Shown here: in pieces, positions 21,032 through 61,408 of the stretch
Numbering within the stretch: the first letter of the stretch is position 1
Layout: each line of letters starts with the position of its first letter
DNA from: Setoptus koraiensis
Lineage: Eukaryota > Animalia > Arthropoda
Length of the DNA stretch: 64,000 nucleotides
Assembly: GCA_048013815.1 (NCBI GenBank)
Contig: CM106586.1
Location: forward strand, 2,790,001-2,854,000
Reading direction: 5' to 3'
Program-made: the position numbers and the translations under genes
The notes under the pieces: model-generated
Seen by the model: only the letters and a program-made list of their open reading frames with translations
The model's database searches: none
Told to the model about the DNA's origin: nothing

Positions 21032-23818
21032 ATGATAACAGACAGAACAAAGCGTCAGCTGATGCAGCCAGCCAGCGAGAGGGACGCCAATGGTGTGTCG
21101 ACGATGCACCGAGCCAGCACAAACAAAATCGCGACTACATCACCGACACCGGCAACAGCAACAACAGCAACGGCAACAACTACAGCAAATCACATCGGCA
21201 ATAAATTAGCAAGGGCCAGTTGCAGGGGAAAACTAGCTACAGCTGATGCATTTTTCGAAGAACCAGCACAATCAAAAGAAGAAGAAGAAGAAGAAGAGCG
21301 ACATGACGGGGATAGCAACAACAATTGCCGAGAGCAACAACGAGATTATTCAGTTTCGCGTGGCGCAGCTTTAAAGCACAATCACAGTCTCAGCAACAAC
21401 AGCAACAACAACAACAACAACATCATCGGTCATCAATTAATTGCGTCATCAAGTGATCGATTGGCGAGCCATCGGCAACTGGCAGCCACAACGAGTGATA
21501 ACCTTCGCAGCGGCACCGGTGGGCAGGTGTCAAACAACGGGCACAGAACAGCAATAGGCAACAACGGCGCGCCAGTGGACAATGCCAATGGTTTCACAGC
21601 AAACAATTGCAACCACATCACAGCAGCAACAACAGCAACAACAACAGCAGCAACACCAACAGCATCGACAACAACAGACAACGCAACAGGTCAAATCGTC
21701 GATGATGATGCAACAGCAATTGTAATTAGTAAAAATAGCACTGTCTCAGAACAACAACAACAACAACAAACAGGGCAACAACAGGATGACGCAATAACTA
21801 ATGAGCAAATTATGCCGACGGCGGCGCCGCAACTTTCAATTAGAGATAGAGCGCAATTGATACAGGGCAAGCTGCATCCAAATAGCCAAATTAGTTTGAC
21901 AAAACAAACAACCAAATTTAACAGCGACAGTGACACCAACGTAACTAGCAGCCGAGTGATTAAATCAGTGATTGATAGCGACCAACAACAACAACAACAA
22001 CAGCAACAACACAGACACAACAATAACAGTATCAATATTGCCAATAATCATCGGGGCAACAACGACGCCTTTGTCCAGTCAGTCACTGGCACGTCGTCGC
22101 TGCCACGTGCCAGTGACTGCGGCGAGCCCGACGATGTCAGGCCGCCCACGCCGCCGCCGCGCCATTCCTCGTTGACGTCGACAGCAAGCTCGTCGACCTG
22201 GTCCCTCGATCAACAGCAAGCAAGTGTCAGTTTTGCTGGGCCCGCTTGCCAACAAGCAACAATGCTGAACAATGTTGCTGATGTGGCCAGCGGAAGCCGA
22301 AGTTGCGGCTACGGTTCGAAGGCGCCCGCGCAACAGGTAAGCAGCGGCGAGCTCGAGCATCACAGGCCGGCCTCGTCGGCAGATTGTGCGGCAATGGGCG
22401 CCAACTCGTTGCACGGGTTTCAGCCGGCCCGACAACAACCACTATGTGCCAACAACTACCCCCATCACAACCATCAGCAACAACAGCAACAACAACAGCA
22501 ACAGCAGCAACAACAACAGCAACAACAGCATTTTTTGCCGAGACAGGCGCAGAGAAAACTGTTGCAACTGAACCAAGGATCTCAGCTAGCGGCCAATTGT
22601 TCGCCATTTTCCATTGACCAATTTTCAATGCATCACGCCAACTTGCAGCACCAGCAACAGCGGCAGCCCCACATGTTGCCCAGTCACATGTTGTTGTTGC
22701 ACAACCAAAATCACAAGCGCCAAGACCTGGACAACAGCGACAGTTTAATAGCGGCAAACCAAATAATGGCGGCACAGCAAGATTGTTCCTCGTTGTCTTA
22801 TCTAATCAGCTCGCAAGCGGCAGCAATGCAACAGCAACAACAACAGCGGCCAGACAAGACAATCGGCGCCACAACAACAACAACAACAACCACCGCCACG
22901 GCTGATGCGGCATCGCTTGCACCAGCAACCACAACAGTTGCGACAGCGACAGGTGAACTGGCGCAACTGATGCAGCGCAGCAGTTCCTCTGGTCAGCACA
23001 CTGCGTCACTGTCGTCGGCGGCGTCGGCGTCGTCGTTGTTGGCGTCGTCGTCGCTGGCCAACGCGATACCAACGACAACAACAACGGCAACAACAACAAG
23101 CGTGCCTGCGCCGGGCAATACGGGCAACGTTAACGGTCAGCAACACCAGCCACAACAACAGAGCCACAGGTCATCAACCTTGGCTTTTAATCCCTCAGTG
23201 ATAAGTAATAACGTTCTTCACAAGTCCGTTGCGTCACAGCCGCCGCCGTTGCAGCAGCATCATGTTGCGCAATCTCCTATTTTCGATCATCAGCAACAGC
23301 ATTATAAACGAGATGCCGCATTGGTCGCGCACGCAATGACCAACAACAACAACAGCAACAGCAACCTGCCAAGACAGCAACAACAACGAGCTGAGAATGA
23401 CGACATGACATCGACGGCGCAACCACAAGAAAACTTAAAACTAAATCCAGCAACAGCCGATGTAATTACATCATCAAATAATGCAATTACTGCATCGACT
23501 TCGATTCAGCAGCGGCAGCCCCACATGGCAGCGGCCAGTTCAGGAAACAATAATAATACTAGCAAGATTGCTTGCCATGCCAACAGCAACAGCAACAACA
23601 ACGACAACAACAGCAATGGCAATGGCAATAGTAATGTGTGTTCTAATTCTAGATTAATTGCCCGTCATCATCAAGCTCAATTATTGTCTTCGGCGTCGTC
23701 GTCGTCGTCGTTGTCCAACTCGACGACCAATCGCGCCGCATCGTCGATGCAGCTCAACTTGGCAAGCTCGCCCGCAGCCGGCCCAGCGTTGCTTGCCGCC
23801 ATCACCAATGGCAACAGC

Positions 23819-23861
<43 letters not shown>

Positions 23862-25726
23862 TTAACGGCAATAATAATAATGGTAATGACGTTATTAATG
23901 GTAATCTAAGTTGCGCAACAATGCTAAGTGCCAGTGGCCTTAATCGACAACAACAGTCGCCACTAATTAGCGGTCATCATCAAATGACGACGCAGACGTC
24001 GTTGCATCATCAGCAAATGCAGCCGTTTATTAATCATCATAAGCATGCCACAACTAATGGTGTTGCCGGCACTGCAAATAAATTAAACATGATGAGTCAA
24101 TCCGCGTCCACGCTAATTAATTTGCATCACCACCAGCAACAACAACAACAGCAACAACTGCAGCAGCAGCAGCAACAACAGCAACAACAGCAACTGCAAC
24201 TACAACAACAGCAACAACAGCGTCTTCAGCGTCACCCCTTGCAGTACCAGCAGCAACATACTCATTTAATTAGCCAACAGCAACATCATCAATCTAGTCA
24301 TCTCTTTGGGCGCCCTAATCTCGGTGCTAATCACCAGGCGGCGGCGGCAGCGGCAACAAGTGTACGCAACCAACAGCAACAACAACAACAACATCGCCAG
24401 TATCAACAGACCATGATGCAACAGCATGCTGTCTCGCCAAATGTTGTTGCTGCCGGTGCATCAAGTGACGCCATTAGAGCCATCAATCAGCCTGTGGTCA
24501 GTTTGCATCAGAGGCACCTGTATGAGCAGCAGCAACAACAGCAGCAACAACAGCAATTGAGCCAAAAACAAAAGCAGCTAATGATGCAATCGCGGGCCCT
24601 TCCACCTAAGCCTGGCAGCGCCGCATTCGCTGCGTCACGAAGATCGCCGCCGGCCCGGCCAATACCCATATCACGGCCCGTGTCGGCAATACCGGCGGCC
24701 GGTGCAGCTACGAGCCTGTGCCAAGCACGTCAACAACAGCATCAACTACAACAACAACAACATCACGAGCAGCAAATGGCGAGCGTTCAAGCGGGCGGCT
24801 TGCGTCATCAGTATCCGGCAACAGCGACTAATCAGGTTAGCCCTAGAACAACAAGCGGCCAAAATGCAGCAACAACAACAACAACAGCAACACAATCGCC
24901 AAATATGATAATGAACAACAACAGCGCACCTCTAACTAACTGTGCATCGGATGCCAATCATCAATCAACAGCGATTAGGCAACCGCTGCCGCTGAGTAGC
25001 AGCGGTAACAACAGTCAGCCAGCAATTCATGATCATCATTGCGTTGCGTCATCGTCGCCGTTAACGGTCAAGGCATCAACTTATGCTAATGAGATGGGCG
25101 AAGCGCCCAAATCAAGTCATAGCGGCAACAGCGCCCAAGCCAATAGCGGCTCAAATGGTCTCTCAAATCACACAGACCATTTCTTGGCGAGCGCTTGTTC
25201 GCGGCCTCGAAGCCTAGTGATGATGTCTAATGCTCAACAAATGGACAATTATGAGCTCTTTTTGAGCGCCGATCTCCGTTTGGCCCAATTAGCCAAACAG
25301 CAGCACCAGCAACAGCAATACTCTCATTCGTTGGATTACGCCAGCGGCGATCTAGCTCGCGCTTCTTGCGCTTCCGGTTTGAACCCCATGCCGACAGCAA
25401 CCGCAACAACAGCGACGGCGGCACCAGAAAACGATCCGTTGTGTTACAACAGCAACAGCAGCAACAACAACAACAACAGATTAATGAACGGCAACAGTGG
25501 TCATGCATCGTTGGCGCCCGTTGTTAATCGGAAGAGATTTTCGCATTGTTTCACCACAGGATCGCCCGGCGATTCTGCCTTTTCGCCCGTCCAACAACTA
25601 GTGCGCCATTCTAGTCGAGTCAATCCTCGCGCACCCTCATCCAATCGCAGTATCCACGACATCGATGCATCGGATCAGCCGCCGGCGCAGCAGCCAATCA
25701 AGTCACCGCAATCGAGACACCCAAAG
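21032..25726 (+). CDS. Very large low-complexity (Q/N/T/S/H-rich) coding exon, probably an upstream exon of the Shroom gene; 5' boundary uncertain (frame open from 20906)
   Basis: 1585-codon ORF, far longer than any shadow ORF here. Strong donor AAG|GTAAGC at 25726/25727 near its end (phase 0). Proline motifs PPTPPPRHSS and PPKPGS. No folded domain recognised; linkage to Shroom is inferred from strand and phase only. Confidence 0.82.
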
Positions 25727-25732
25727 GTAAGC
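25727..25732 (+). other. 5' splice site (donor) of the large exon
   Basis: AAG|GTAAGC; the frame closes 21 codons later in repeat-derived sequence. Confidence 0.7.
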
Positions 25733-26141
25733 CAAACGTCAGCTAATTATTTCTACTTGTCGATGATCGTCGATGATCGTCGACGATAGATGATCGTCGA
25801 TGATGATGTCCACTGTCAGTGGCTAAAATTATCATTATTCGCGACAGCTTTCTCGCTGCTCGCCAGCCCGTTCGTAATTTATCAAATTCGTCCAATGTTT
25901 CAGCTGTTCGCTCACGAAATTCGCGCGCTGTCTTACCGACAAAACTCGCGTTGTCTCAGAAAATGTCGGACTGTTGATTCGCGTAGAACCAAGTCGATTC
26001 TGTCGATGCTAATCTCTATTCGAATCTCAATTGGAACGGCGCTTCTATGCGCCGTTCCATGCCAATTAGCGGGTAATTAGCGCAATTAGCGCGCGCTAAT
26101 TGGCACGCGCTCGTTACCGCCGCATTGGTGGCGTAAAACTG

Positions 26142-26199: not shown

Positions 26200-26743
26200 G
26201 GGGCCAGCCCACTCTCATTGGTGGCTGGGTATGTTTGTTGCGCATGTGCATTATGCTGTTGAAGGTGTCTCGCCATGAGCAGACGCACTGGTTAGGGGGC
26301 TTGTAGCTTAGGTATTACGTGAGGGCGAGCGGTTAGCCGAGCAGTATTTGTTTGCTGACACAAGTTTGCTGTCAGTTTCAACTGTCAGTTTCAATTGTCA
26401 GTTTCAAGCAAGAAAAGAGAAGATTGCAAACAAGTTGTGGGCCCATTTTGCGCCCGTTGAACCAACAGAGCGCCTCAAGTTTGTAAAGTTAAGTTTGTTA
26501 ATTAGCAAGTTAATTAATACGTTGTGTTTGTGTCACTGGATAGATATTAATAATCTAGTGCAAAATGGCGCCATAGATAACAGAGAAGCTAATGCGCGAT
26601 TAAAAGTGTCAATATACTTTGCGTCGAATAACAATACCAGCGAGTGACAGTTTCAACAGCGAGATGCTGTCATATTTGCTGATAGTTTTCGGTTGCGGCT
26701 GGTGCTTCTGTTGGCTGCTCTTTTTGAATTATACCTCAAACAG

Positions 26744-27995
26744 CGACAACAACGGCGACGACAATCAGCAGCAACAACAACAGCAGCAGCAAGACGAGGG
26801 CGAGCAAGCGTCGACAACGGCGCCACAGCCACTGAAACAAGTTCAATCAGATTATCAATCGGATCAATTATTATCAGACGACAACAACAACGAACCCGAC
26901 AAAAAGACGCTGCTGAGCTGGTCGCAAGCGGACAACTGCAGCGACTGCTCGTCTTGCCAAAACTGTAACAGCTCGTCTTGCCAAAACTGCAACAACTGCT
27001 CGCCTGGTTGCCGGAGCTGCAACTACATTGTGCCCGCCAAACAGGATGTTTATGTGTCGCTGGACCTGAACAAGCAACGGAGGCTCCGTCTAGTGGACGA
27101 TTGTCGGACAAGGTCGCCGTGGTCGGCGTATGGTGGCCACGAGGGAGCCATGTCGTGCAAATCGCTACTTATCGACTTGCACGAGTTTGTTGCGCGAAAG
27201 TGTGTTGCGCAATATCGCTCATTCACCTGTCGACTGTACAGCAGCGGCAGCAACATAGGCGAGCATGGGCACAGTGCGGCACAGTTACGTCAATTCATCA
27301 CCGTTAACCAGCACAACCCTGGCGGCTGCACAGCAAGTGCAACTGCGCCGACAGGTGACTCTTGTATAATTGACACCACCGCACCAGGTGAGCCACTGAT
27401 AACAGGTGAGCGGGGGCTGGGGCGAGTGCGGACCAACCTGCATCAGGTGCCAGTGAAACGCCGACCCTTGGCGGCCAATTTTATTGGAGGAGGCCGGCAG
27501 CGGCGCCAGAGCAGAACTAGACAGGGCAGCCTGATAATAAACCCGTTTGAGAGCATAGCGGCCGCAGCGGAGGATCGTTGCGCCAATTGTTGTTGCCATT
27601 ATTGTTTGTGTCGAGGCATCGACTGCTCACAAGAGGAGCTCATAACAGCGACACCAACTGGACATTGCCACAAACTGCAAGGCAACAACTGCACCGCAAT
27701 TAAAGTAACAACTTGTGACGCAATAACAGTTCACGCAACAACAGCGCCCATGACAAGCGCCAGCAATAGTGAGCAGCAGCCATCAATCAGCTTGCCGTGC
27801 CAGCTTGCCAAGACAGCCAACAGCGCCGACAACAGCAGCAACCGCAACAGTGACAACGGCCACAACAGCGACAGCTTGTTAGCTAATATTTGCGAGCATC
27901 GTGCGGACGCCGCTAGCGCACCAGAGCGCCACCGCAACCGGCCACAAGCGGCCGCCGGCCCGACAGCGCCCGTGATAAAGGCTTTCATTAAAAGT
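26744..27995 (+). CDS. Candidate coding exon (Cys-rich, low complexity), possibly an alternative first or internal exon of the same gene
   Basis: 473-codon ORF 26619-28040 with a consensus donor AGT|GTAAGT at 27995/27996 (phase 0). Candidate acceptor cctcaaacAG ends at 26743 (phase 2); in-frame ATG at 26664. No homology recognised. Confidence 0.42.
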
Positions 27996-28001
27996 GTAAG
28001 T
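27996..28001 (+). other. 5' splice site (donor) of the candidate exon
   Basis: Consensus GTAAGT 15 codons before the ORF stop. Confidence 0.5.
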
Positions 28002-28814
28002 TGCATCTCGCTCATTTTTCGACCCGCTCGCCAACTTTAGACCGGCGGTGCGGCCGGCAGCGTGACCGACGGTCCGTCTGTTTGTTTGTTTGTTTGTTTG
28101 TGCTCTGATGTGGGCCCCATTGTTGTGTGCGATGTTGATTGTTGCGTTCAGCTTTTGGCCACTTTTTGCGCTGCTGCTGTCGGCCAACAACGGCAGCGGT
28201 CGGGCCCAGTGGCGCCCGACGAGTGGCGAGCGGAAACCGCTCACTGCGGTGCGGCCGTCATTGGTCGGCCACACTCAAGACTGCGGGGCCAATTGAGCCA
28301 AGTGAATTGCTGGAGGCGCTGTTGCCCAGTGGGGCCCACTGTGCGCGGGCCCCATTCAAACGGCCGCTCTGGTGGCAGGATCTGGCACGATGGCCGCACC
28401 GACAAGAATAGCTGGCGACTTGCTTCATTATGTGACTGTTCTATTCTTGTCTCTGAGGCACGACGAGGCACAACAAGACACGACGAGGCACAACAAGACG
28501 CGTCGGACAGCGCTCTGGCTAGGTGGTGGCCAGATAATAAAGTAGATTATAAAGCAGCGTTGAGCATAATAAATAAACTGCGCTCGCCGGCGCGCCGCTG
28601 TTATCTAATGATTGATGGAGTTAGTGTCACTTATTTTAGGCTTGCACTTCACTGGAATAGCGCGCGCAAACTGCCGCTCAAACTGCCAGCGACCAGCCGG
28701 ACCAAAGGTTGGCAGGCCCGAGAATGGGGCCCGGCCCGAAGAGAAGACAAAACGGCGCCAACGTTGCCACTGCACACTGTTCACTACAGTCAGCGCGGCC
28801 CCTTGAGCGGCACC

Positions 28815-28866
28815 AGACTCTGGAGTCTAGAGTCTGGACTCCAGAGTCTAGACTCTAGACTCTGGA
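28815..28866. repeat. Palindromic mosaic of AGACTCT/AGAGTCT
   Basis: 13-bp inverted arms 28815-28827 and 28837-28849, plus a 14-bp palindrome at 28843-28856. Confidence 0.9.
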
Positions 28867-29331
28867 GCGAAAGGGGGTGACGGGCCCCTTTCACCTCTCT
28901 GGCCTTTGTTGCGTCGCTGTGGCTCGATCATACGCGGCAGCAGTTTGGCGGCGAGTCAACTCAAAACAAAATGACCACAACAATGCCGTCACTGCCAGCC
29001 GCTCGCAAGACCGCTGCGGCCAACGGGCCAAAAGTCGACCAATCTCACGCTCTCGCCACGCACTTGCCAGAGATTTGGTGCGCCAACCTGACTGGGCACA
29101 AAATACCTCGCTGTTGCGATTGTCCGATCAAGTTCGCTTGAGTTCGTCTCAGTCTGTCGGGAAATCTCCGCATGTTCAGCATGTCGCCGCAGCCCTTTTT
29201 TAGCTTTGATCGCCGGGGCCCCATTGTGCTTGCGCTGTCGACCGGCACGCTGGCCGACGCGCCATGATCCCACTCGATGATTAAACGCCCCAAGCTGCGT
29301 CTCTATTTTTGGCTGGCCCGCTCTCTTTCTA

Positions 29332-51803: not shown

Positions 51804-53020
51804 TGGACACAAAAATAGCAAACACAAAAAGAGATCGGTCACGACACGGCCATTGCGACTGCAACCGCCAGTTCACTGGATCAGCGGCCCGATTGCGGCC
51901 TGATCGGCGGCCAAAGCGCTCCGATTTGCGTTGCGATTGGCCGCGTCAGCGGGCCCAATTTTACAATATTTCCTACTTGTTCGCTCGCAAATTCCGTATT
52001 TCGTATACGTTGCGATGTTGCCAGTCCCAAGTGCGTTCGCTGGTCACCACGGCAATTGGTCGGCGGATTCTCTCTCCTTTGTTGGCTGCTGAGATCACAA
52101 GCAAGTGCGATCTAAAATCGCACACAATCAATCGATGCGTCCATTGGCGGCCAGTCGTGGACCGAACGAGACACAACAACGCAGCAATCAGTGCTAAGCC
52201 AGGCCGGCATCATGACTGATTGCGTCACTCATGATGCCGGCCCACACAGTCACTTGTTGTGTAATGTGAAAGTGCCACATAGCCACTAATGACGATGAGG
52301 CTTTATTATAGCAGTTGGTCAGTTGTTGTTTGTGTGTTGTTGTTGTTTGCGGTGGCGCTGAGAAAGAGGACACACACACTGGCCGGCAGGCCACATCGGC
52401 CGCGTCGTTGTTGATTGGACAGCGCCGATATTAAATATTGTGCGAGCATAATCCGGCGGTGGCACAATCGATGAAGCCCATTTAAGCCATTGGTCTCACG
52501 AGCCAATGGCGCTCGAATCTTGCAGAGTTAGAGAGCGACCAGAATGCCAACAATTGATGATGATCGTTTTATCCGATCCGTGCCAAAACGATTGAATCAC
52601 CTGTTGTGTTTCAGCGCGGTGTGCTGGTCACTCACTCAGCTGGTCACTCACTCAGCTGCTCTCTCTCTCTCTCTCTCTCTCTCTCGCACTTCTAACAAAC
52701 TTCTAACAAACTTCTCACAAAGAGCTCGTTTTAGGTTAAGCTTGACTGACTCATAGGCAAACACCGACCGAACACTGACGGCTGTGAATGCACTTTGACG
52801 CAACTTGCCAAGCAAACTAAACTGAAAGCAAATGACAAGCGGCCCAAATGACCGCTCCACAACAACCACGATCAACAAACAAGCAACGCGCCCGATCCGG
52901 CAGCGTTAACAAACAATCGCCAACTAATTAGCTTAACTATTGCTAACTCTCTTTGTTTATTTCCATTGTCTTACATCCACTAATGGCCACTAATGGCCGC
53001 TCATATATTATATATGCTAC

Positions 53021-53052
<32 letters not shown>

Positions 53053-53090
53053 AAATAACATGTTTATTATGTAATACGCCGGTACTGTGT

Positions 53091-53106
53091 TATCAACTCA
53101 CTACAG
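53091..53106 (+). other. 3' splice site (acceptor) of the Shroom terminal exon
   Basis: tatcaactcactacAG, in frame with the ASD2 ORF; an alternative in-frame CAG ends at 53127. Confidence 0.6.
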
Positions 53107-56100
53107 GTATCAAGCGGATCAATTCAGTTGATTGTGCCAGAGTGGGGCCTAGGGGGCGCTGGTAGCACCTCACCGTCGGCCAGCAGCGCCAACAGCAACA
53201 ACAGCAGCAACAACAGCAACAACAACAGCAACAACAGCGACATCAACAACAGTAAGTGCGCCAGCTCGACAGCGGACACAAACAGCGCAACTAGCGGTGA
53301 AATTGCGTCAGCAGCAGTGTCAGGTAGCTGGCAAGTGAACCCAGTGGATTGCAACAGCAGGCAGCGAGCAACAGCAAACGGTGAGCAGCAAGCCGAGAGT
53401 CAGCAGCCGCATGAGAATCGGCAGCAACAACGGCAGCAACAGCAACAACAACAGCAACAACAGCAACATGCGTTGCGCAAGGTGATGCCGGACAGCAAGG
53501 GCTTGAACAGCACGCCAGAAGACGATCGGAAAGTCGCTCAGCAGCAGCAGCAACAGGCGGCCATAAATTCGGCTCTGGCTTCGAATGGCTGCAACTCGAC
53601 CGGTTGGCAGGCTAAGAAGAGTTCGAGCGTTGTTGCGCACAACCAGCAGCGACAACATTGCATAGAAGAAGAACAACAACAACAGCGACAACAGCAGCAG
53701 CAACAGCAACAACAGCAGCGGCCAGCCAGCAACAGGGCAGGCAAAGAACAAGCGAGCGAACAACAACAACAGCAACAGCACCAGTTGACAGGTGAACGGG
53801 CCATAGAGCGTCAGCGATCGCTGGCAAGTGTTGCGAGCCAGACAACGCCACGGCCAGGTGCAGTGAAGCGAGCACAAGAAGAACGCGACCACGATCGAGC
53901 CAGAGAAGAACACAACGAAGAAGAAGAAGAAGAAGAACAGAGCGAACGAGAAGAACAGAGCGACGAAGAAGAAGCAGAACAGAAGAACGAAGAACAGAAG
54001 AACGAAGAACAGAAGAACGACGAACAGAAGAACGGGGCACACAAGAAGGGACAAGAGGAAGCAGAAGAGAGCAAAGAAGGGCCTGCGAATAAAGAAGAGA
54101 AGGACAGTGGCAGTGGCAGTGGCCGACAGCAAGCAACACACCGGCTCTCAGGGTTGTTGCGGCACCAACACCGACCACCGTTAAGCGATCACACTCACAG
54201 ACGTGCCCAAGAATACCACCACCAAGACCAAGACGATGACCAAAACCAACAACAACAACAAATCGATAGCCACCGACAACGATATTTGATGCTAATAAAC
54301 GCCGGCAGAAGTGAGAACAACGATGACAACCAGTCGACAAATTCAACGCACCATCCCATAGAGAACATAGACAACATAGACAACATAGAGAAGAACCAAT
54401 CACAACAACAACAACTGCCAAGAAGTAGTAGCAGAAGCAGCGGTGCTGGTACCAGTAGCGTCAGCAGTGATGAACACGATGATAATAATAGTCATGTTGT
54501 TGCTATCAGTGATAAAAATAAACGAAATATCTACGACAACAATAATATACAACAACAATTAGACCAACATACACAACAACCGCATACCACCACCAGCATC
54601 AACAACCACAACAACAATATGTCTGGCAGCCACGCTGACAGCTTGATTATGGTCGACGAAGATCCTGTTGTTTTGATACCAAAACTCATATCTCGATTAG
54701 ATAGAAAATTGAGTGTCATGAAACAAGAACAGCTGAGTCTCATTGGCGATATTGAATCAAATGAATTGGCTGGCGAACGTTTGTTTGATTCCATGAAACA
54801 ATATCTCACTGTTAATGAATTTGACAAATTAATGGTACACTCACAGGAGATTGAGCAAGTGACAAAATTGATTTTAACACTAGAGGCTCGCTTACAACAG
54901 ATTGAGTGTGATATCAAAACAAACAAGGATAAACAGCTGCAATTGCAACAGCAGCAACTGCATCATTCCACCACCACCACCAACAACAACACAACTGCTA
55001 CTACTGCTCCATCTAATACTCAAAATACTCAAAGTATTATTAAATCATCTCAACGACAGATTAGTGATAGCCAAGAATTGACCAACAGAAGCAACCATTA
55101 TCAAAGGGTTGGCTATAATTGCAACAAGTCAGCAACTATTGACAACTTTTGTGAGGCCAGCAGCAGTAACACAACAACAAATAAATACCTGAATTTGCGT
55201 GGCATTAGCGATCCGACGGCCTCAACAGGTAAAACGAGCAGGGGCCAGCATCAGCATCATCCGTCGTTGACACATTTGGAGACACATCATACGTTCCATA
55301 AGACAACCAGCAGTTGTGGCAAGACAACTGGCTTGAGTGCCACATCGGCTGCCATTCCGAACAGTAGCAGCACAACCGGTTCGGACAATGACCAAAAACA
55401 CCTATCCAATGGGGGGCACGAGGATCAACATTGTGACACCATTAGCACCGGCAACAATATTAGCTCGAAAAGATATAGAGCAAACAAATTGATTGCCAAC
55501 AATCAATTGTCGCCTAGATCCAGGCATCAACAGCCGCACCATCGTCACCAGCACCATCAGAGTCAAAGCAAAATGGACAGGGACAATGCCGGCAACAACA
55601 GCAACAATTGTGGAAATGCTACCGATCAGAGTATGAATAGCAGTAACAATGATAGCAATTGCTGCCATAAGGGCTCATCCAGTGATTCGATATTTAATTC
55701 AACCGACTCCGCCATTGGTAGCACTTTGACAGGTAGCATTAGTGCAATTAGTCAGGATGGCGACGAATCGCCTAGCTGTTCGCCGACGCCCCAATCGCAC
55801 CTCTCGTCGACATTATCGGTGGCCTCCTCTTCCTACACCAATCAACAGAGCCTATCGGTGGCAAGTAGCTCGCCCAGTTCGCCGGCCTCTGTATCATCGT
55901 TGCACAGTTGCTCAACAACAACAAACACAACTATCACTCCCAACATTATTGCTGCCAATACTAATGCAACTACAACCACCACCTCAACCACCACACCACC
56001 ACCACAATCAATAATGACAGAAACAACGAAAACATCAGTCATTGATAGATCAGACCAGAATTGTCAACACAATGTCGGTACGATAGGAACACCAACATCG

Positions 56101-56772
56101 GAAAGTGGCAGTATGAGCTTTCAAACGGACAACAGTGACCACGTGATAGGCTCCAGGAATCTCTTAATCAAAAACAAGCTTGCCATGTCTCTCTACCAGT
56201 CTCACCCGTCGCTATCGGCGTTGGTTTCGGCACCCTCGTCTATGCCCGATTTGTTTGTGTCAAATAACACTAGCAACAGTAATAGTTTGGTGGCCAAGTC
56301 CTCGAGATCAAACACAAACTCAAGCTCGGCTTCTACGAGATCTATCAACCAATACGGTCCAATTGCATCCAAGTCGATCAATAACACCAATCAAGTCACT
56401 GCTGATATGCTAGAGCTTTCCTCGATGGATATCAACTCTGAGCTTGTGTTTATGCTCACCGATTTGGACATATTGCTGTCGAAACGTGATAGATTGCGTA
56501 CACAAATTGAGGAGGCCAAACAATTGGATGAGTCTATCACAAAAAGGACAGAGACCATCATACAAAGGATATTAATGAAATATTACGATGAGACACACAA
56601 TGAAGAAATTAAAGAATTTCGTCAATATACAAGACTAAAATCTTTGTTGATCAAGGAAACTAAGGATGTCGCAGATAGAATAGACAATGCCGAGAAACAG
56701 TTGGCTCAATTGAAGAAAAGCAACGAAACACCGGCCTCATCGAATAACGAACGCTTGATAGTGAACGAATAA
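53107..56772 (+). CDS. Shroom: Shroom-family protein, terminal coding exon with a split ASD2 (SD2, Rho-kinase-binding) domain
   Basis: LISRLDRKLSVMKQEQLSLIGDIESNELAGERL...NEFDKL...EQVTKLILTLEARLQQIE (54673-54918) and LLSKRDRLRTQIEEAKQLDESITKR...FRQYTRLKSLLIKETKDVADRIDNAEKQLAQLKKS (56461-56721) match the two halves of recalled ASD2 sequences. In-frame stop at 53056-53058 with no ATG near the ORF start. Candidate acceptor tcaactcactacAG ends at 53106 (phase 0). AATAAA lies 23 nt after the stop. Confidence 0.88.
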   Translation, partial: VSSGSIQLIVPEWGLGGAGSTSPSASSANSNNSSNNSNNNSNNSDINNSKCASSTADTNSATSGEIASAAVSGSWQVNPVDCNSRQRATANGEQQAESQQPHENRQQQRQQQQQQQQQQQHALRKVMPDSKGLNSTPEDDRKVAQQQQQQAAINSALASNGCNSTGWQAKKSSSVVAHNQQRQHCIEEEQQQQRQQQQQQQQQQRPASNRAGKEQASEQQQQQQHQLTGERAIERQRSLASVASQTTPRPGAVKRAQEERDHDRAREEHNEEEEEEEQSEREEQSDEEEAEQKNEEQKNEEQKNDEQKNGAHKKGQEEAEESKEGPANKEEKDSGSGSGRQQATHRLSGLLRHQHRPPLSDHTHRRAQEYHHQDQDDDQNQQQQQIDSHRQRYLMLINAGRSENNDDNQSTNSTHHPIENIDNIDNIEKNQSQQQQLPRSSSRSSGAGTSSVSSDEHDDNNSHVVAISDKNKRNIYDNNNIQQQLDQHTQQPHTTTSINNHNNNMSGSHADSLIMVDEDPVVLIPKLISRLDRKLSVMKQEQLSLIGDIESNELAGERLFDSMKQYLTVNEFDKLMVHSQEIEQVTKLILTLEARLQQIECDIKTNKDKQLQLQQQQLHHSTTTTNNNTTATTAPSNTQNTQSIIKSSQRQISDSQELTNRSNHYQRVGYNCNKSATIDNFCEASSSNTTTNKYLNLRGISDPTASTGKTSRGQHQHHPSLTHLETHHTFHKTTSSCGKTTGLSATSAAIPNSSSTTGSDNDQKHLSNGGHEDQHCDTISTGNNISSKRYRANKLIANNQLSPRSRHQQPHHRHQHHQSQSKMDRDNAGNNSNNCGNATDQSMNSSNNDSNCCHKGSSSDSIFNSTDSAIGSTLTGSISAISQDGDESPSCSPTPQSHLSSTLSVASSSYTNQQSLSVASSSPSSPASVSSLHSCSTTTNTTITPNIIAANTNATTTTTSTTTPPPQSIMTETTKTSVIDRSDQNCQHNVGTIGTPTSESGSMSFQTDNSDHVIGSRNLLIKNKLAMSLYQSHPSLSALVSAPSSMPDLFVSNNTSNSNSLVAKSSRSNTNSSSASTRSINQYGPIASKSINNTNQVTADMLELSSMDINSELVFMLTDLDILLSKRDRLRTQIEEAKQLDESITKRTETIIQRILMKYYDETHNEEIKEFRQYTRLKSLLIKETKDVADRIDNAEKQLAQLKKSNETPASSNNERLIVNE

Positions 56773-56794: not shown

Positions 56795-56800
56795 AATAAA
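56795..56800 (+). terminator. Polyadenylation signal candidate for Shroom
   Basis: AATAAA shortly after the stop, in a 508-bp gap between the convergent Shroom and MED24 genes. Confidence 0.5.
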
Positions 56801-57280: not shown

Positions 57281-60200
57281 CTATCTAGCTCCGAGCGTCA
57301 TTTTTTGCTGTTGCTGCGGCTGTTGCTGTTGTTGCTGATATTGACCCGTAGACGACGATATGTTAGGCATGGTCCCACTTGGCGAGCTACCAGAAAATCG
57401 AATGAGTTGCGGACCCTCACTCTTCACCGAGACTGAAATGTTGTTAGTGGGGTTGGAGAAGTTATCATTGATGTTGTGAGACGCCTCAAATGAATCTGTT
57501 TCGTTGGTATTGCGATTTTGGCTAGATAAAACTGATCGCTTTGAAGCTAGCTCACATATGGCGCGTGCTGTGGCCCAACGGCTCTCAGTAGTGGACAGAT
57601 TGCTGATAGCTAAAGCGAGCTCAAAAGTAAGCTCATTGGAAAATAACTTAATTATATCCATGAGTATGTAGGGAGGTGTTAATTTCGTAATATCGTGAGC
57701 ATCCTTACCAGCACAGATTACAGTTTGTTCGAGAAATAATACAGGGAACAGCGTTCTCTGGCTCATACAGGTGTCTGACATAATTCTTTTGAATAATCTC
57801 ATCAAAGTCACCAGGCTGGACTCCAAATTCGCTAGAGGAGCCTTGCTGTCTCTTTTCGGCACAAAAATCGGCAGCTGATCTGCTTTAGGAGCTTTCGTTG
57901 GCTCTTTATCAACACCATTGGTGCTGATCGATTGACTGTCAATCTTGGATTTTTTATCAATATGACCCAGATCGATGGCAGGGTCATCTGACTCAGTTAT
58001 CATCATAAAATCTGATTCATGTCCCATCATAAGCATACCATTATTACTCGCAGCATCAGTGTTATAGAATCCAGGCTCTTCCTTTATTTTGACTGATTGG
58101 GGTGGTTTATTCTGATTTTGTTCATTCTCTTGACTACCAAAAGGAATATAACTCGTTGAAACGTACTTCAGGTGTCTTATAGCCTCGATGATGGTCATGA
58201 CAGACAAACGAGCCAGGGCATAAGCTCTAGGTTGTATTAAATTTGATTGTTTTTGCTCGCATATCAGGTTATCAACTATGGTATCTTCAATCAGTGCCAG
58301 AGCGAATTCCTCAATGTTCAAATGGAATAGACCAAACACTATGTCGACAGCTCTGTTTAGTTCGCTGGGTGATTCTAGTAATAGTATTCGTTCGACGATG
58401 ATATTAGCGAATGATCTGTAACCAATCAATTTAGTCAAAGCCTCGAATGTGTGCAGAGATTTTAAATCTGTCCAGCCACGCTCTAAGCTGTGTCCGAGTT
58501 CGGCAGCTAAAATTTCATTGGTAGACAATGTAGTAAAAAATCGCTTATTATTGGGCAAGTGGATTTGCTGAGAACTGCTTTGAGATCCTGATGTCACTGT
58601 GTCGCCAGTCTGCGATTCACCTGCATCGACAGAAGAAGATTCATTATTGTTGAATGAAGCTGAAGCTTGATGAGAGCTGATAGAATTAGGTGAGGGCGCT
58701 AATTCATTGTATATCTTCTTAATAATATGACACATGAGAGAAGACCTTTCTCGGAAACTTTCGCAGGCCTGACTGATAGAATCCTTGTCTTGGGTTGATT
58801 GATTATTGTTTCCGCTATCACTATTGCTTCTTTCTGCAGACAAGGGTGCAGTAGTTGGTGCCGTCTGATTGGTGACATCAGCTTCACTATTCTCAGTAGA
58901 CGTCTTTAAAGGGCTATTATTGTTGCATTGACTATTCTGTTGATATTGTTTTGTGGAAGAATTATATCTCATCAATTCTTGGAGCATCGCTAGAGACTTC
59001 TTCCTGTCTTGCGATCCTAGAGTTTTGATGTGCGCTCTAAGCCACGAGGCAATAACAAGTCCCAAGAAGCACATCTTAGATTTAATTTTATCGACAATCA
59101 TCTTTATCATGGCATCCGATATTAATTCATGTTGCCAGGCGTTGAGAATCTCGCTCACTGCCGCGGGTATATTTTCGCAGACTTCGTGCCAATCAATGTT
59201 GATTGTCTGAAAAGTATTTTGTTCTGAAGTCAGATTCATCAACTGTTTTATCAGAAGATCAACTTTCTTGCTATCGCAATGAATTAGTAGTTGCTTGGGA
59301 CAATTCAATCTCGTAGAACTGTTGTAGAATTTCAAATACCAAGATGCGAACGCAGAGTTTCTATCTTTTGGAGCAATAACATCACATCCATAGTTATTCG
59401 CGATGTGACATAACATGAGAAAAGTAATATCAAACAATAATGAGCGCAAAAGTGATGATCGACTATTCTCTTCACTGAGGCGTTTGTTTGTCTCATTGAA
59501 TTCAATTAACTTCGAAGTGAAGGCTTGTAATTTCCCAGATGCTGCAGCTGCGCTCAAAATAAGTTCGAAACTCTTTCCATTTACCATCTGACATAAAACT
59601 CGGAGCAGCTGAGCTTGATCTTTTGAATAGTCTGTGTCCAGAGTACGCAATATACTTATCATGGTAGGTTCAGCTTTAAGAACTGTATGTAATCCGGAAT
59701 GACCCGATTCTTGAGTGCCCATAGTTGGTCTGGATTTGATGATTGCCTGTCTAGCACTTACTAGATCATGTAACCTACTTGAGAGGCTACTTTCTGTCTT
59801 GGAAAGTTCCTTGACGAGGCACCCGAGAAAGTCACAGTTGCATTTGGTGTCAGCTAAGTCTAACAAAGGTGTATATCCGTTCAACTTCTCGATCGCTTTT
59901 GTGAGATCTAGAGCGTATTGAGAGTGACTCTGATCGTGAGTCGGTTTTGTGTTATTATTATTAGTTCCGTTGCCCGATAAAGTATCCGCGTCGAAAGAGT
60001 TGTGGGCTGTAGTAATTTTCGGGGGTGAATCGTTACAAATTCTATTCAGTTCCTTCAGTAGATGAGGCATTTTTAAAAAAGTGAAAACTGCCCATTTTCC
60101 ATCTTCTGTTGTTTTTTTAGCATCTATGGATCCAGTAAGGCATATTCGTATTATCTCACAATAAACACTGGATAGGGGTAAATTATAGGAATCTTTGATT

Positions 60201-61408
60201 GTAGCTATTTGGTTTGCGACTAGTCTAATATCTCTGGCTGGCCAAAACACGACATCAAATGCAATCAATGAGTAGAGACAAGCAAATAATGCCTGACTTG
60301 GTGATGAGTCCAAGCTCACGCCACTGAGGTGGTGAGATAATTGCCCTAATACATCCATCATTACTGACTTGTGATAACTATTCATTTTGTTATTATGATG
60401 TATACCATGATTGATGGAGGAATTCCTAAGTTGTTTTGCGGCTACAACAGAAGGATGAGAATCTAATGAGTTCATTCGACGACTAAAATTTGCTATAACA
60501 TCTAAATGTTCTCGGCCTTGAATAGAATTAACAACAGTTGAATCTTTGATAGTATTCTCAACCATATCGAATGTCTTGATTGTTTCCTGAAATTTTTGTT
60601 CATATTCTAGTCTAAAAATGTATAATAAGGCCATGGTGAATGGTCGTCCTATCAGGTACGCAATTATCTCAGTTGCTAATATAATAACTTGATGATATTC
60701 ACTCGATGGATGGTAAGTACCGACGCCACTAAATACATTGTTAGGATTGTTGATACCAAATAGGCTGTTGTTTGGATTGTTGGGGGTCGGATTGTTATTA
60801 TTACTATTGTTGTTTCTATTAGTTGGTCCGCTAACGAATCCGCCAACATTCTGTTGGTTAATATTGTTAGTTTGTTGTTGTTGCTGCTGTTGGAGTTGTT
60901 GAGCGACCAATGTGTTGGCAGTTGATGTTATCGATGAATTTGAGCATATCTTTTGAATAGAATTATAAATACATTTTATGAGCCAATGCAATATATCACC
61001 CACTGCCCTACATAGATGAATGCAGTCTTCCTCGGAGCCTGAACAAGAGATGTGATCTCTGAAGGCCTTAACAAACTCCAATAGGCATATCATAGCTAAA
61101 GGTTTGTTTTGGGTGAGATTATCATCACAGGAACGTGCGATGGCGGCTAGGACTGAGCCATGTGATACAAGCTTCGTTTTAATAGAGTAATTTAGATAAG
61201 ATATAAACAATTCATTTGGTGCCGGTCCAATCAAAGCTTGTTTCAATATACAATCGGCTAAATCGTACACATCGCCATTGACACCACGGGGTAAAACTTT
61301 CCTTATGCCGTGAGCCCATTCCGCCTCTGACCATTTACATCTCCAGGCGTTTAATAATAGAGACTTTATTGCGGAGGCTTTGCTATTTATTATTGAGGGC
61401 CCGTCCAT
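57281..61408 (-). CDS. MED24: Mediator of RNA polymerase II transcription subunit 24 (TRAP100), single coding exon, 1375 aa
   Basis: The N-terminus LLLNAWRCKWSEAEW...LADCILKQALIGPAPNELFISYLNY matches recalled MED24 (ILQAWKERWSDYQW...LADALLEQAMIGPSPNPLILSYLKY). The central LKAEPTMISILRTLD...GKSFELILSAAAASGKLQAF...LLFDITFLMLCH and the C-terminal LALAISNLS...ATARAI also match. Uninterrupted ATG-to-stop ORF. Confidence 0.96.
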   Translation of the reverse strand: MDGPSIINSKASAIKSLLLNAWRCKWSEAEWAHGIRKVLPRGVNGDVYDLADCILKQALIGPAPNELFISYLNYSIKTKLVSHGSVLAAIARSCDDNLTQNKPLAMICLLEFVKAFRDHISCSGSEEDCIHLCRAVGDILHWLIKCIYNSIQKICSNSSITSTANTLVAQQLQQQQQQQTNNINQQNVGGFVSGPTNRNNNSNNNNPTPNNPNNSLFGINNPNNVFSGVGTYHPSSEYHQVIILATEIIAYLIGRPFTMALLYIFRLEYEQKFQETIKTFDMVENTIKDSTVVNSIQGREHLDVIANFSRRMNSLDSHPSVVAAKQLRNSSINHGIHHNNKMNSYHKSVMMDVLGQLSHHLSGVSLDSSPSQALFACLYSLIAFDVVFWPARDIRLVANQIATIKDSYNLPLSSVYCEIIRICLTGSIDAKKTTEDGKWAVFTFLKMPHLLKELNRICNDSPPKITTAHNSFDADTLSGNGTNNNNTKPTHDQSHSQYALDLTKAIEKLNGYTPLLDLADTKCNCDFLGCLVKELSKTESSLSSRLHDLVSARQAIIKSRPTMGTQESGHSGLHTVLKAEPTMISILRTLDTDYSKDQAQLLRVLCQMVNGKSFELILSAAAASGKLQAFTSKLIEFNETNKRLSEENSRSSLLRSLLFDITFLMLCHIANNYGCDVIAPKDRNSAFASWYLKFYNSSTRLNCPKQLLIHCDSKKVDLLIKQLMNLTSEQNTFQTINIDWHEVCENIPAAVSEILNAWQHELISDAMIKMIVDKIKSKMCFLGLVIASWLRAHIKTLGSQDRKKSLAMLQELMRYNSSTKQYQQNSQCNNNSPLKTSTENSEADVTNQTAPTTAPLSAERSNSDSGNNNQSTQDKDSISQACESFRERSSLMCHIIKKIYNELAPSPNSISSHQASASFNNNESSSVDAGESQTGDTVTSGSQSSSQQIHLPNNKRFFTTLSTNEILAAELGHSLERGWTDLKSLHTFEALTKLIGYRSFANIIVERILLLESPSELNRAVDIVFGLFHLNIEEFALALIEDTIVDNLICEQKQSNLIQPRAYALARLSVMTIIEAIRHLKYVSTSYIPFGSQENEQNQNKPPQSVKIKEEPGFYNTDAASNNGMLMMGHESDFMMITESDDPAIDLGHIDKKSKIDSQSISTNGVDKEPTKAPKADQLPIFVPKRDSKAPLANLESSLVTLMRLFKRIMSDTCMSQRTLFPVLFLEQTVICAGKDAHDITKLTPPYILMDIIKLFSNELTFELALAISNLSTTESRWATARAICELASKRSVLSSQNRNTNETDSFEASHNINDNFSNPTNNISVSVKSEGPQLIRFSGSSPSGTMPNISSSTGQYQQQQQQPQQQQKMTLGAR

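Follow-up and report, generated by a model that had tools for sequence, protein, structure and literature searches.

The stretch of DNA analyzed here, hereafter the window, comprises 64,000 nucleotides of Setoptus koraiensis (assembly GCA_048013815.1, contig CM106586.1, positions 2,790,001 to 2,854,000 of the forward strand). It contains the terminal coding exon of a Shroom gene, an open reading frame (ORF) of 1214 amino acid residues whose C-terminal part matches the Pfam domain ASD2 (PF08687), the Rho-kinase (Rock)-binding SD2 region of Shroom proteins. The two halves of this domain were separated by an insert of 1542 nucleotides, or about 510 codons, at the turn between helices B and C. The reading that we favor, and regard as probable, is that this gene encodes a mite Shroom whose SD2 carries a lineage-specific, translated and disordered loop of about 510 residues that has grown from the B-C turn. 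The positions of all features are listed in Table 1.

The whole ORF matched Pfam ASD2 in two stretches with a score of 65.2 bits (cut-off, 26.4 bits). Each half also matched the model on its own. The N-terminal half scored 52.4 bits (E 8e-14) over model positions 118–193 and the C-terminal half 46.3 bits (E 6e-12) over positions 208–288, in agreement with the original prediction, in which two partial matches on consecutive segments of the hidden Markov model were expected. Similar results were obtained with a purpose-built ASD2 profile, which matched the window protein collinearly at profile positions 118–238 and then 252–332. Moreover, the solved SD2 chains of human Shroom2 (5f5p and 5f4y) and fly Shroom (3thf) each matched the window protein in two stretches, which were contiguous in the chains (ending at 97/102 and resuming at 106/108) and about 515 residues apart in the window protein. 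The two halves represent successive portions of a single ASD2 domain, and the window protein truly belongs to the Shroom/ASD2 family. No match to PDZ or ASD1 was found in the 1214-residue ORF or in the upstream ORFs scanned; most invertebrate matches likewise contained ASD2 only.

Positions 54673–56721, when read in frame 1, comprised 683 codons with no stop codon. The insert itself contained no in-frame stop, as had been claimed when the two halves were first noticed in one frame, whereas each of the other five frames contained 15–45. Given the base composition, the probability that the insert frame is free of stops by chance was 6e-12. Serine and threonine accounted for 32% of the insert residues (23–36% across the clade described below) and disorder-promoting residues for 75%. 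Short codon repeats were also present. The purpose-built ASD2 profile was built from 63 arthropod sequences and hinge lengths were read from its domain tables as the excess over the canonical hinge, which in the window protein was 507 residues.

Relatives of the window protein were gathered by word-based and exhaustive protein searches. In eleven of them, ASD2 was interrupted in frame at precisely the same position, with hinge excesses ranging from 148 to 375 residues. Measured between fixed anchors, the inserts of these relatives were 177–406 residues long and that of the window protein was 536 residues long. A maximum-likelihood tree was constructed from the profile-aligned helical columns of both halves, from which the hinge columns had been dropped. 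In this tree, the window protein and its eleven relatives formed a clade with a support of 100/100, in which the window protein was sister to the other eleven. The clade was nested in a group, also supported at 100/100, that held all six named Acariformes. A dipteran affinity, which had been suggested by the Gln/Asn repeats, was ruled out by the same tree, in which the Drosophila-type sequences joined the mosquitoes. The identities of the two SD2 halves were 51–67% among the members of the clade and only about 30–43% between the clade and non-mite SD2.

The reading frame of the insert was open in 8/8 species for which DNA was examined. Over the aligned insert, the proportion of nonsynonymous differences (pN) was lower than that of synonymous differences (pS) in all 28 pairs of these eight species. 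The synonymous sites were saturated, with pS ranging from 0.45 to 0.94, so that no proper ratio of nonsynonymous to synonymous substitution rates (dN/dS) could be estimated for the insert. Only 77 of the 648 alignment columns were at least 75% identical, and most columns were unalignable low-complexity sequence. Two islands, by contrast, were found in 12/12 members of the clade. Island 1 had the form R-x-x-S-D-P-T...H-Q-H-H-x-S-L, and its core, R-[GN]-[IVL]-S-D-P, fits a 14-3-3 mode-I type pattern and lies in a region where the predicted local distance difference test score (pLDDT) was below 50. Island 2 had the form SSDSIFN-x-x-DSAIGST. Among five species, 11 of the 14 invariant residues of island 1 and 12 of the 13 invariant residues of island 2 were specified by at least two synonymous codons. 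Invariant residues encoded by varying synonymous codons argue for selection at the peptide level, and hence for translation of the insert in at least part of the transcripts. Island 3, which is Ser-rich and is followed in the relatives by S-P-x-L-V-S-P, was weaker and fell below the strict conservation scan of the clade alignment. The inserts of other mites, which were 40–160 residues long, lacked the two islands. Taken over the twelve related sequences that have it in common, the comparative data indicate that the insert is an open and selectively maintained coding sequence, which is very probably translated and used.

By its pattern, island 1 is a candidate phosphorylation site for basophilic kinases and a candidate 14-3-3-type site. 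Sequences loosely like island 1 (R-S-Q-S-S-P...H-[AG]-S-[LI]) were observed near the N-termini of two Brevipalpus-type Shroom proteins, P0155 (residues 74–100) and P0146 (residues 9–40). Within the collected set, patterns of the type R-x-x-S-x-P...H-A-S-L were confined to P0155, P0146 and the window clade. The likeness may be due to chance in Ser/His-rich sequence.

Outside this clade, the hinge of SD2 was short in most groups. The hinge excess was at most 19 residues in the 182 sequences that matched ASD2 in a single piece, and at most 5 residues in 172 of them. These sequences were from Collembola, a cockroach, Orthoptera, beetles, Hymenoptera, Hemiptera, Odonata, mayflies, mosquitoes, Drosophila-type flies, crustaceans, ticks, spiders, horseshoe crabs, a centipede, amphioxus and vertebrates, and some were unnamed. 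Among the first 120, which were mostly named proteins, the excess ranged from 0 to 14 residues. The hinge excess of other acariform mites ranged from 13 to 131 residues. For instance, it was 128 residues in Brevipalpus obovatus, 53 in Oppiella nova, 45 in Oppia nitens and about 13 in Leptotrombidium and Dinothrombium, and the hinge of Halotydeus destructor was also somewhat lengthened. The two-piece matches with an excess of 25–131 residues included named acariform mites, and the remainder were mostly metagenome or Logan sequences. One fish protein with ASD2, KAJ4920440.1 of Pogonophryne albipinna (P0182), had a hinge gap of 74 residues and was the sole outlier that is not from mites; this gap probably reflects faulty annotation, for instance intron retention.

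According to these measurements, the long insert is not the norm for arthropods; it marks the far end of a trend seen in acariform mites and is standard within the sub-lineage of the window. The possibility raised at the outset, that similarly long inserts are common in arthropod Shroom, therefore does not hold for arthropods at large, in which the 182 sequences have 0–19 extra residues, but does hold within this mite lineage. RefSeq already annotates the shorter insert of Brevipalpus as coding, and no mention of Shroom in mites turned up in a search of the literature. The long hinge loop is a new domain architecture within the Shroom/ASD2 family.

An AlphaFold2 model of the window protein, calculated from an alignment of seven sequences, contained four helices, A to D, with pLDDT values of 75–90. 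Residues 151–637 of the model, with pLDDT values of about 30–45 and no secondary structure, were disordered. A second AlphaFold model, of the relative with the shortest insert (12 sequences), showed the same four helices and a disordered loop. The helices flanking the loop are predicted to pack as a four-helix hairpin in which A pairs with D and B with C, as in human Shroom2. When compared with human Shroom2 (5f5p_A) by VIA-align, the window model was superimposed over 181/181 residues with a Z score of 12.0 and a root-mean-square deviation of 3.9 Å, and the second model gave a Z score of 11.4 over 181 residues. A Foldseek search against the PDB aligned one half only, with E above 0.6.

The insert is located between two surface patches, SC2 and SC3, that are required for Rock binding by fly SD2 (PMC3364177). 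In the alignment to 3thf, its position corresponds to about fly residues 1488–1492, whereas SC2 and SC3 span fly residues 1470–1476 and 1509–1516, respectively. The Arg of SC2, R1474 in fly and R1838 in mouse Shroom3, is stated to be invariant in all SD2 motifs, and mutating it abolishes both Rock binding and the closure of the neural tube (PMC4163662). This Arg was invariant in 12/12 sequences of the clade. Where the SC3 pattern needed for Rock binding is L-K-x-x-[IL]-x-R-R, the window protein reads L-D-E-S-I-T-K-R and the relatives read L-E-E-C-I-V-[KR]-R; the first Leu and the last Arg were kept, the Lys was replaced and an Arg was changed to Lys. In human Shroom2, the four helices of ASD2 form the pairs A-D and B-C, and ROCK1 binds helices B and C, according to the part of PMC10626209 that cites Zalewski et al. 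(2016). The SD2 of the window protein would probably still bind Rock via its helices B and C.

Similar to the canonical SD2 of Drosophila (3THF) and human Shroom2 (5F4Y, and 5F5P in complex with Rock1), the window protein has the same order of helices, the Rock-binding Arg and the SC2/SC3 frame, with SC3 conserved in part. Different from them, in which the B-C connection is only a few residues long in the solved chains, it has about 507 residues in excess at this connection. In its crystal, fly SD2 forms an extended dimer whose long helix B makes up the "body" segment, and hinging at the central "symmetry point" of this helix has been proposed (PMC3364177). Such a continuous helix B probably cannot form in the window protein, so that, if function is kept, a hinged and folded-back arrangement would have to be the working one. 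Under the reading favored here, SD2 would still fold, and its hairpin would present helices B and C to Rock. The loop would leave the tip of the Rock-binding coiled coil, roughly 12–30 residues from both patches, and could act as a flexible carrier of conserved short linear motifs, of which the R-x-x-S-D-P of island 1 or the acidic, Ser-rich island 2 could regulate or scaffold the Shroom-Rock module.

Several points weigh against this reading. Both structural models were calculated from shallow alignments of 7 and 12 sequences, respectively. The structural match to human Shroom2 is by itself non-discriminating: because generic helical hairpins also give Z scores of 10–12, the fold match serves to corroborate the sequence homology. 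SC3 is only partly conserved (LDESITKR in the window protein vs. LKSDIERR in fly), and the long stem branch that leads to the SD2 of the clade (1.06 changes per site) could mean an altered function. Moreover, the retention of the insert in mRNA is argued from comparison of sequences, and every contig that was fetched from a relative is genomic. Finally, the functions proposed for the motifs, as 14-3-3 site or kinase site, are pattern matches.

A more specific form of this reading, which we consider rather unlikely, is that the loop is a regulatory module that arose beside the kinase-docking site. Rock, or another basophilic kinase, held by SD2 would phosphorylate R-x-x-S-D-P-T of island 1, and a reader such as 14-3-3 would then bind and switch the hairpin between Rock-competent and Rock-blocked states. 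Vertebrate SHROOM3 has been reported to bind 14-3-3 (PMC10722951). The likeness of island 1, with R-x-x-S-x-P in 12/12 sequences, to the SHROOM3 interaction is at the level of pattern only. The 14-3-3 site of vertebrate SHROOM3 lies outside ASD2.

The loop could also be functionless, if a permissive hinge had gathered low-complexity sequence by neutral expansion and SD2 worked despite it. The roughly threefold variation of insert length within the clade (177–536 residues between anchors), the prevalence of unalignable columns, the short codon repeats and the motif-free inserts of other mites are all consistent with this explanation. It is nevertheless unlikely for the insert as a whole, as two islands show little or no change across the twelve sequences despite saturated synonymous sites, and pN was below pS in every pair. 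Neutrality may apply to the filler between the islands, and under the favored reading, too, much of the additional 130–360 residues by which the window insert exceeds those of the relatives is likely to be neutral filler.

Alternatively, part of the insert might be removed from some transcripts as an exitron, resulting in a short-hinge isoform beside the long one. The donor-like sequence CAG/GTAAAA, to which the original prediction pointed, is present at 55228/55229. When scored with a crude generic matrix that may not suit this genome, it was the best GT of the interval and fell at about the 98th–99th percentile of the GT sites of the window. Together with the AG at 56019/56020, which follows the longest AG-free stretch of the insert (113 nucleotides), it would delimit an in-frame segment of 792 nucleotides, and together with a weak acceptor at 56413 an in-frame segment of 1185 nucleotides. 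Similar to known exitrons, the insert is a long stop-free, low-complexity stretch in a coding exon; its length is divisible by three, and it contains at least one donor-like site. Different from them, it has conserved peptide motifs inside and no conserved splice signal. The donor signal is not conserved because, at the codon pair concerned, the relatives have GGC, GGA or GGT followed by CTA, whereas the codons of the window read T-G-K-T. The site is, moreover, located inside island 1, whose peptide is conserved in 12/12 sequences. Among the approximately 100 GTs of the interval, chance would yield about one that scores this high, and the AG-free stretch of 113 nucleotides corresponds to a run of Thr/Pro codons (ACC repeats). 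Such an excision would also take out islands 2 and 3, on which selection acts at the amino acid level in the lineage of the window as well; constitutive removal is thus excluded. Alternative splicing of part of the insert appears quite improbable. Of the two alternatives that were initially put forward, the exitron that starts at this GT was not upheld. A functional SD2 with a long disordered loop gained comparative support, from the insert that is open in 8/8 species and common to 12 sequences, from its conserved islands and from the kept Rock-binding Arg, together with the predicted hairpin.

That SD2 has been neofunctionalized or has decayed, with no canonical Rock binding and with the halves as separate coiled-coil segments on a linker, is very improbable, since the stem branch of 1.06, the low identity to non-mite SD2 and changes in SC3 at two of the four sites that are mutated in a binding-defective variant are offset by halves that remain similar within the clade over saturated synonymous divergence, by the retention of the invariant SC2 Arg, of the heptad leucines and of the L...[KR]R frame in SC3, and by the AlphaFold models, in which the halves are packed as in human Shroom2.

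The shorter inserts of other acariform mites bear on how the disordered loop favored here could have originated. Those of Brevipalpus obovatus (XP_074603433.1), Oppiella nova (CAG2159591.1) and Oppia nitens (XP_054154094.1) are at the same point of SD2 as that of the window protein, and these Shroom proteins belong to the same group of the gene tree. No intron was found at the hinge in Oppiella or Dinothrombium, in which the whole SD2 is encoded by one exon. Exonization of a hinge intron is not indicated as the origin of the insert because SD2 is free of introns at the hinge in these two mites. The loop probably grew by stepwise in-frame expansion of low-complexity sequence at a permissive hinge, which is the simplest origin.

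Table 1. Features of the Shroom terminal exon in the window (positions are those of the window)
Feature	Position	Strand	Basis or remark
Terminal coding exon (ORF) of the Shroom gene	53128..56772	+	1214 aa; ORF list and Pfam ASD2
Probable acceptor AG of the terminal exon	53105/53106	+	Preceded by an AG-free zone
SD2 N-terminal half (helices A and B)	54664..54969	+	AlphaFold, Pfam and PDB sequence matches
SD2 helix A	54664-54798	+	AlphaFold, residues 49-93
Pfam ASD2 piece 1	54682-54909	+	Model positions 118-193
SD2 helix B	54811-54969	+	AlphaFold, residues 98-150
SC2 equivalent, TLEARLQ (fly SLSERLA)	54877..54897	+	Alignment to 3thf
Arg codon in the SC2 equivalent	54889-54891	+	Aligned with fly R1474 and mouse Shroom3 R1838
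Hinge insert at the B-C turn of SD2, S/T/N/Q/H-rich, predicted disordered	54919..56460	+	1542 nt, about 510 codons
Island 1, R-G-I-S-D-P-T ... H-Q-H-H-P-S-L	55198..55269	+	Conservation scan; R-x-x-S-x-P pattern; holds the donor-like GT at 55229
Island 2, SSDSIFN-x-x-DSAIGST-x-T-G	55678..55734	+	Conservation scan
Island 3, weaker, Ser-rich, QSHLSS-x-x-SV-x-SS	55792..55833	+	Consensus in alignments A2 and A3
SD2 C-terminal half (helices C and D)	56431..56727	+	AlphaFold, Pfam and PDB matches
SD2 helix C	56431-56583	+	AlphaFold, residues 638-688
Pfam ASD2 piece 2	56467-56721	+	Model positions 208-288
SC3 equivalent, LDESITKR (fly LKSDIERR)	56524..56547	+	Alignment to 3thf
SD2 helix D	56590-56727	+	AlphaFold, residues 691-736
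Stop codon TAA of the Shroom ORF	56770-56772	+	
AATAAA, candidate polyadenylation signal	56795..56800	+	23 nt past the Shroom stop; pattern match by script

Just before the terminal ORF, an AG-free zone of 175 nucleotides (52930–53105) was observed, which contains an (AC)15 run at 53022–53051. Further upstream, an ATG-initiated hydrophobic N-terminus, MLSYLLIVFGCGWCFCWLLF, is encoded at 26664–26723 (+) within the ORF at 26619–28040. It was 50% identical to the first 20 residues of isoform X2 of Brevipalpus obovatus Shroom (E 1.5e-4). The start of the Shroom gene may thus lie some 30 kb before the last exon and encode a leader that resembles a membrane anchor. Two further long ORFs, at 21032–25789 (+, 1585 aa) and 28062–28880 (+, 272 aa), had no Pfam match. 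Antisense ORFs of 269–273 aa were found at 53320–54421 (–), opposite the Gln/Glu-rich part of the Shroom exon; they mirror the CAG/CAA/GAA codon repeats of this part and are not likely to be genes.

Downstream of Shroom, the window contains Med24 at 57281–61408 (–), a single uninterrupted ORF of 1375 codons with Gln/Asn-rich inserts (Pfam Med24_N, E 2e-217). Med24 is convergent with Shroom, and an AT-rich spacer of 508 bp separates the two genes. The same convergence was found in seven relatives (L001, L004–L007, L009, and L010), in three species of which Med24 was confirmed by Pfam and otherwise, as in L007 and L010, recognized as an ORF of matching size and strand. A POU-homeobox gene was present beyond Med24 in L004–L006. 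The contig of P0002 is different in that RRS1 and TCTP genes are near Shroom, and that of P0131 ends just past Shroom.

The arrangement in which SD2 acts on Rock is debated, the candidates being the extended dimer of the fly crystal and the folded-back four-helix hairpin of human Shroom2, which has been observed both alone and on Rock1. In the mite lineage described here, a disordered segment of 150–510 residues has been kept precisely where hinging was proposed, between the patches for Rock binding. As a natural experiment, this lineage can test the hinge model: should its Shroom proteins still bind Rock, a continuous helix would be dispensable and the B-C turn would be freely engineerable. 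If the loop were indeed the regulatory module outlined above, these proteins would be natural proof that the function of Shroom needs only the folded-back SD2 hairpin and not the extended fly dimer. The motifs of the loop are candidate regulatory sites right beside the surface on which the kinase would dock. Across acariform mites, with about 13, 50, 130 and 150–500 residues, the hinge of Shroom would exemplify how a structured coiled-coil domain gains a functional disordered region step by step.

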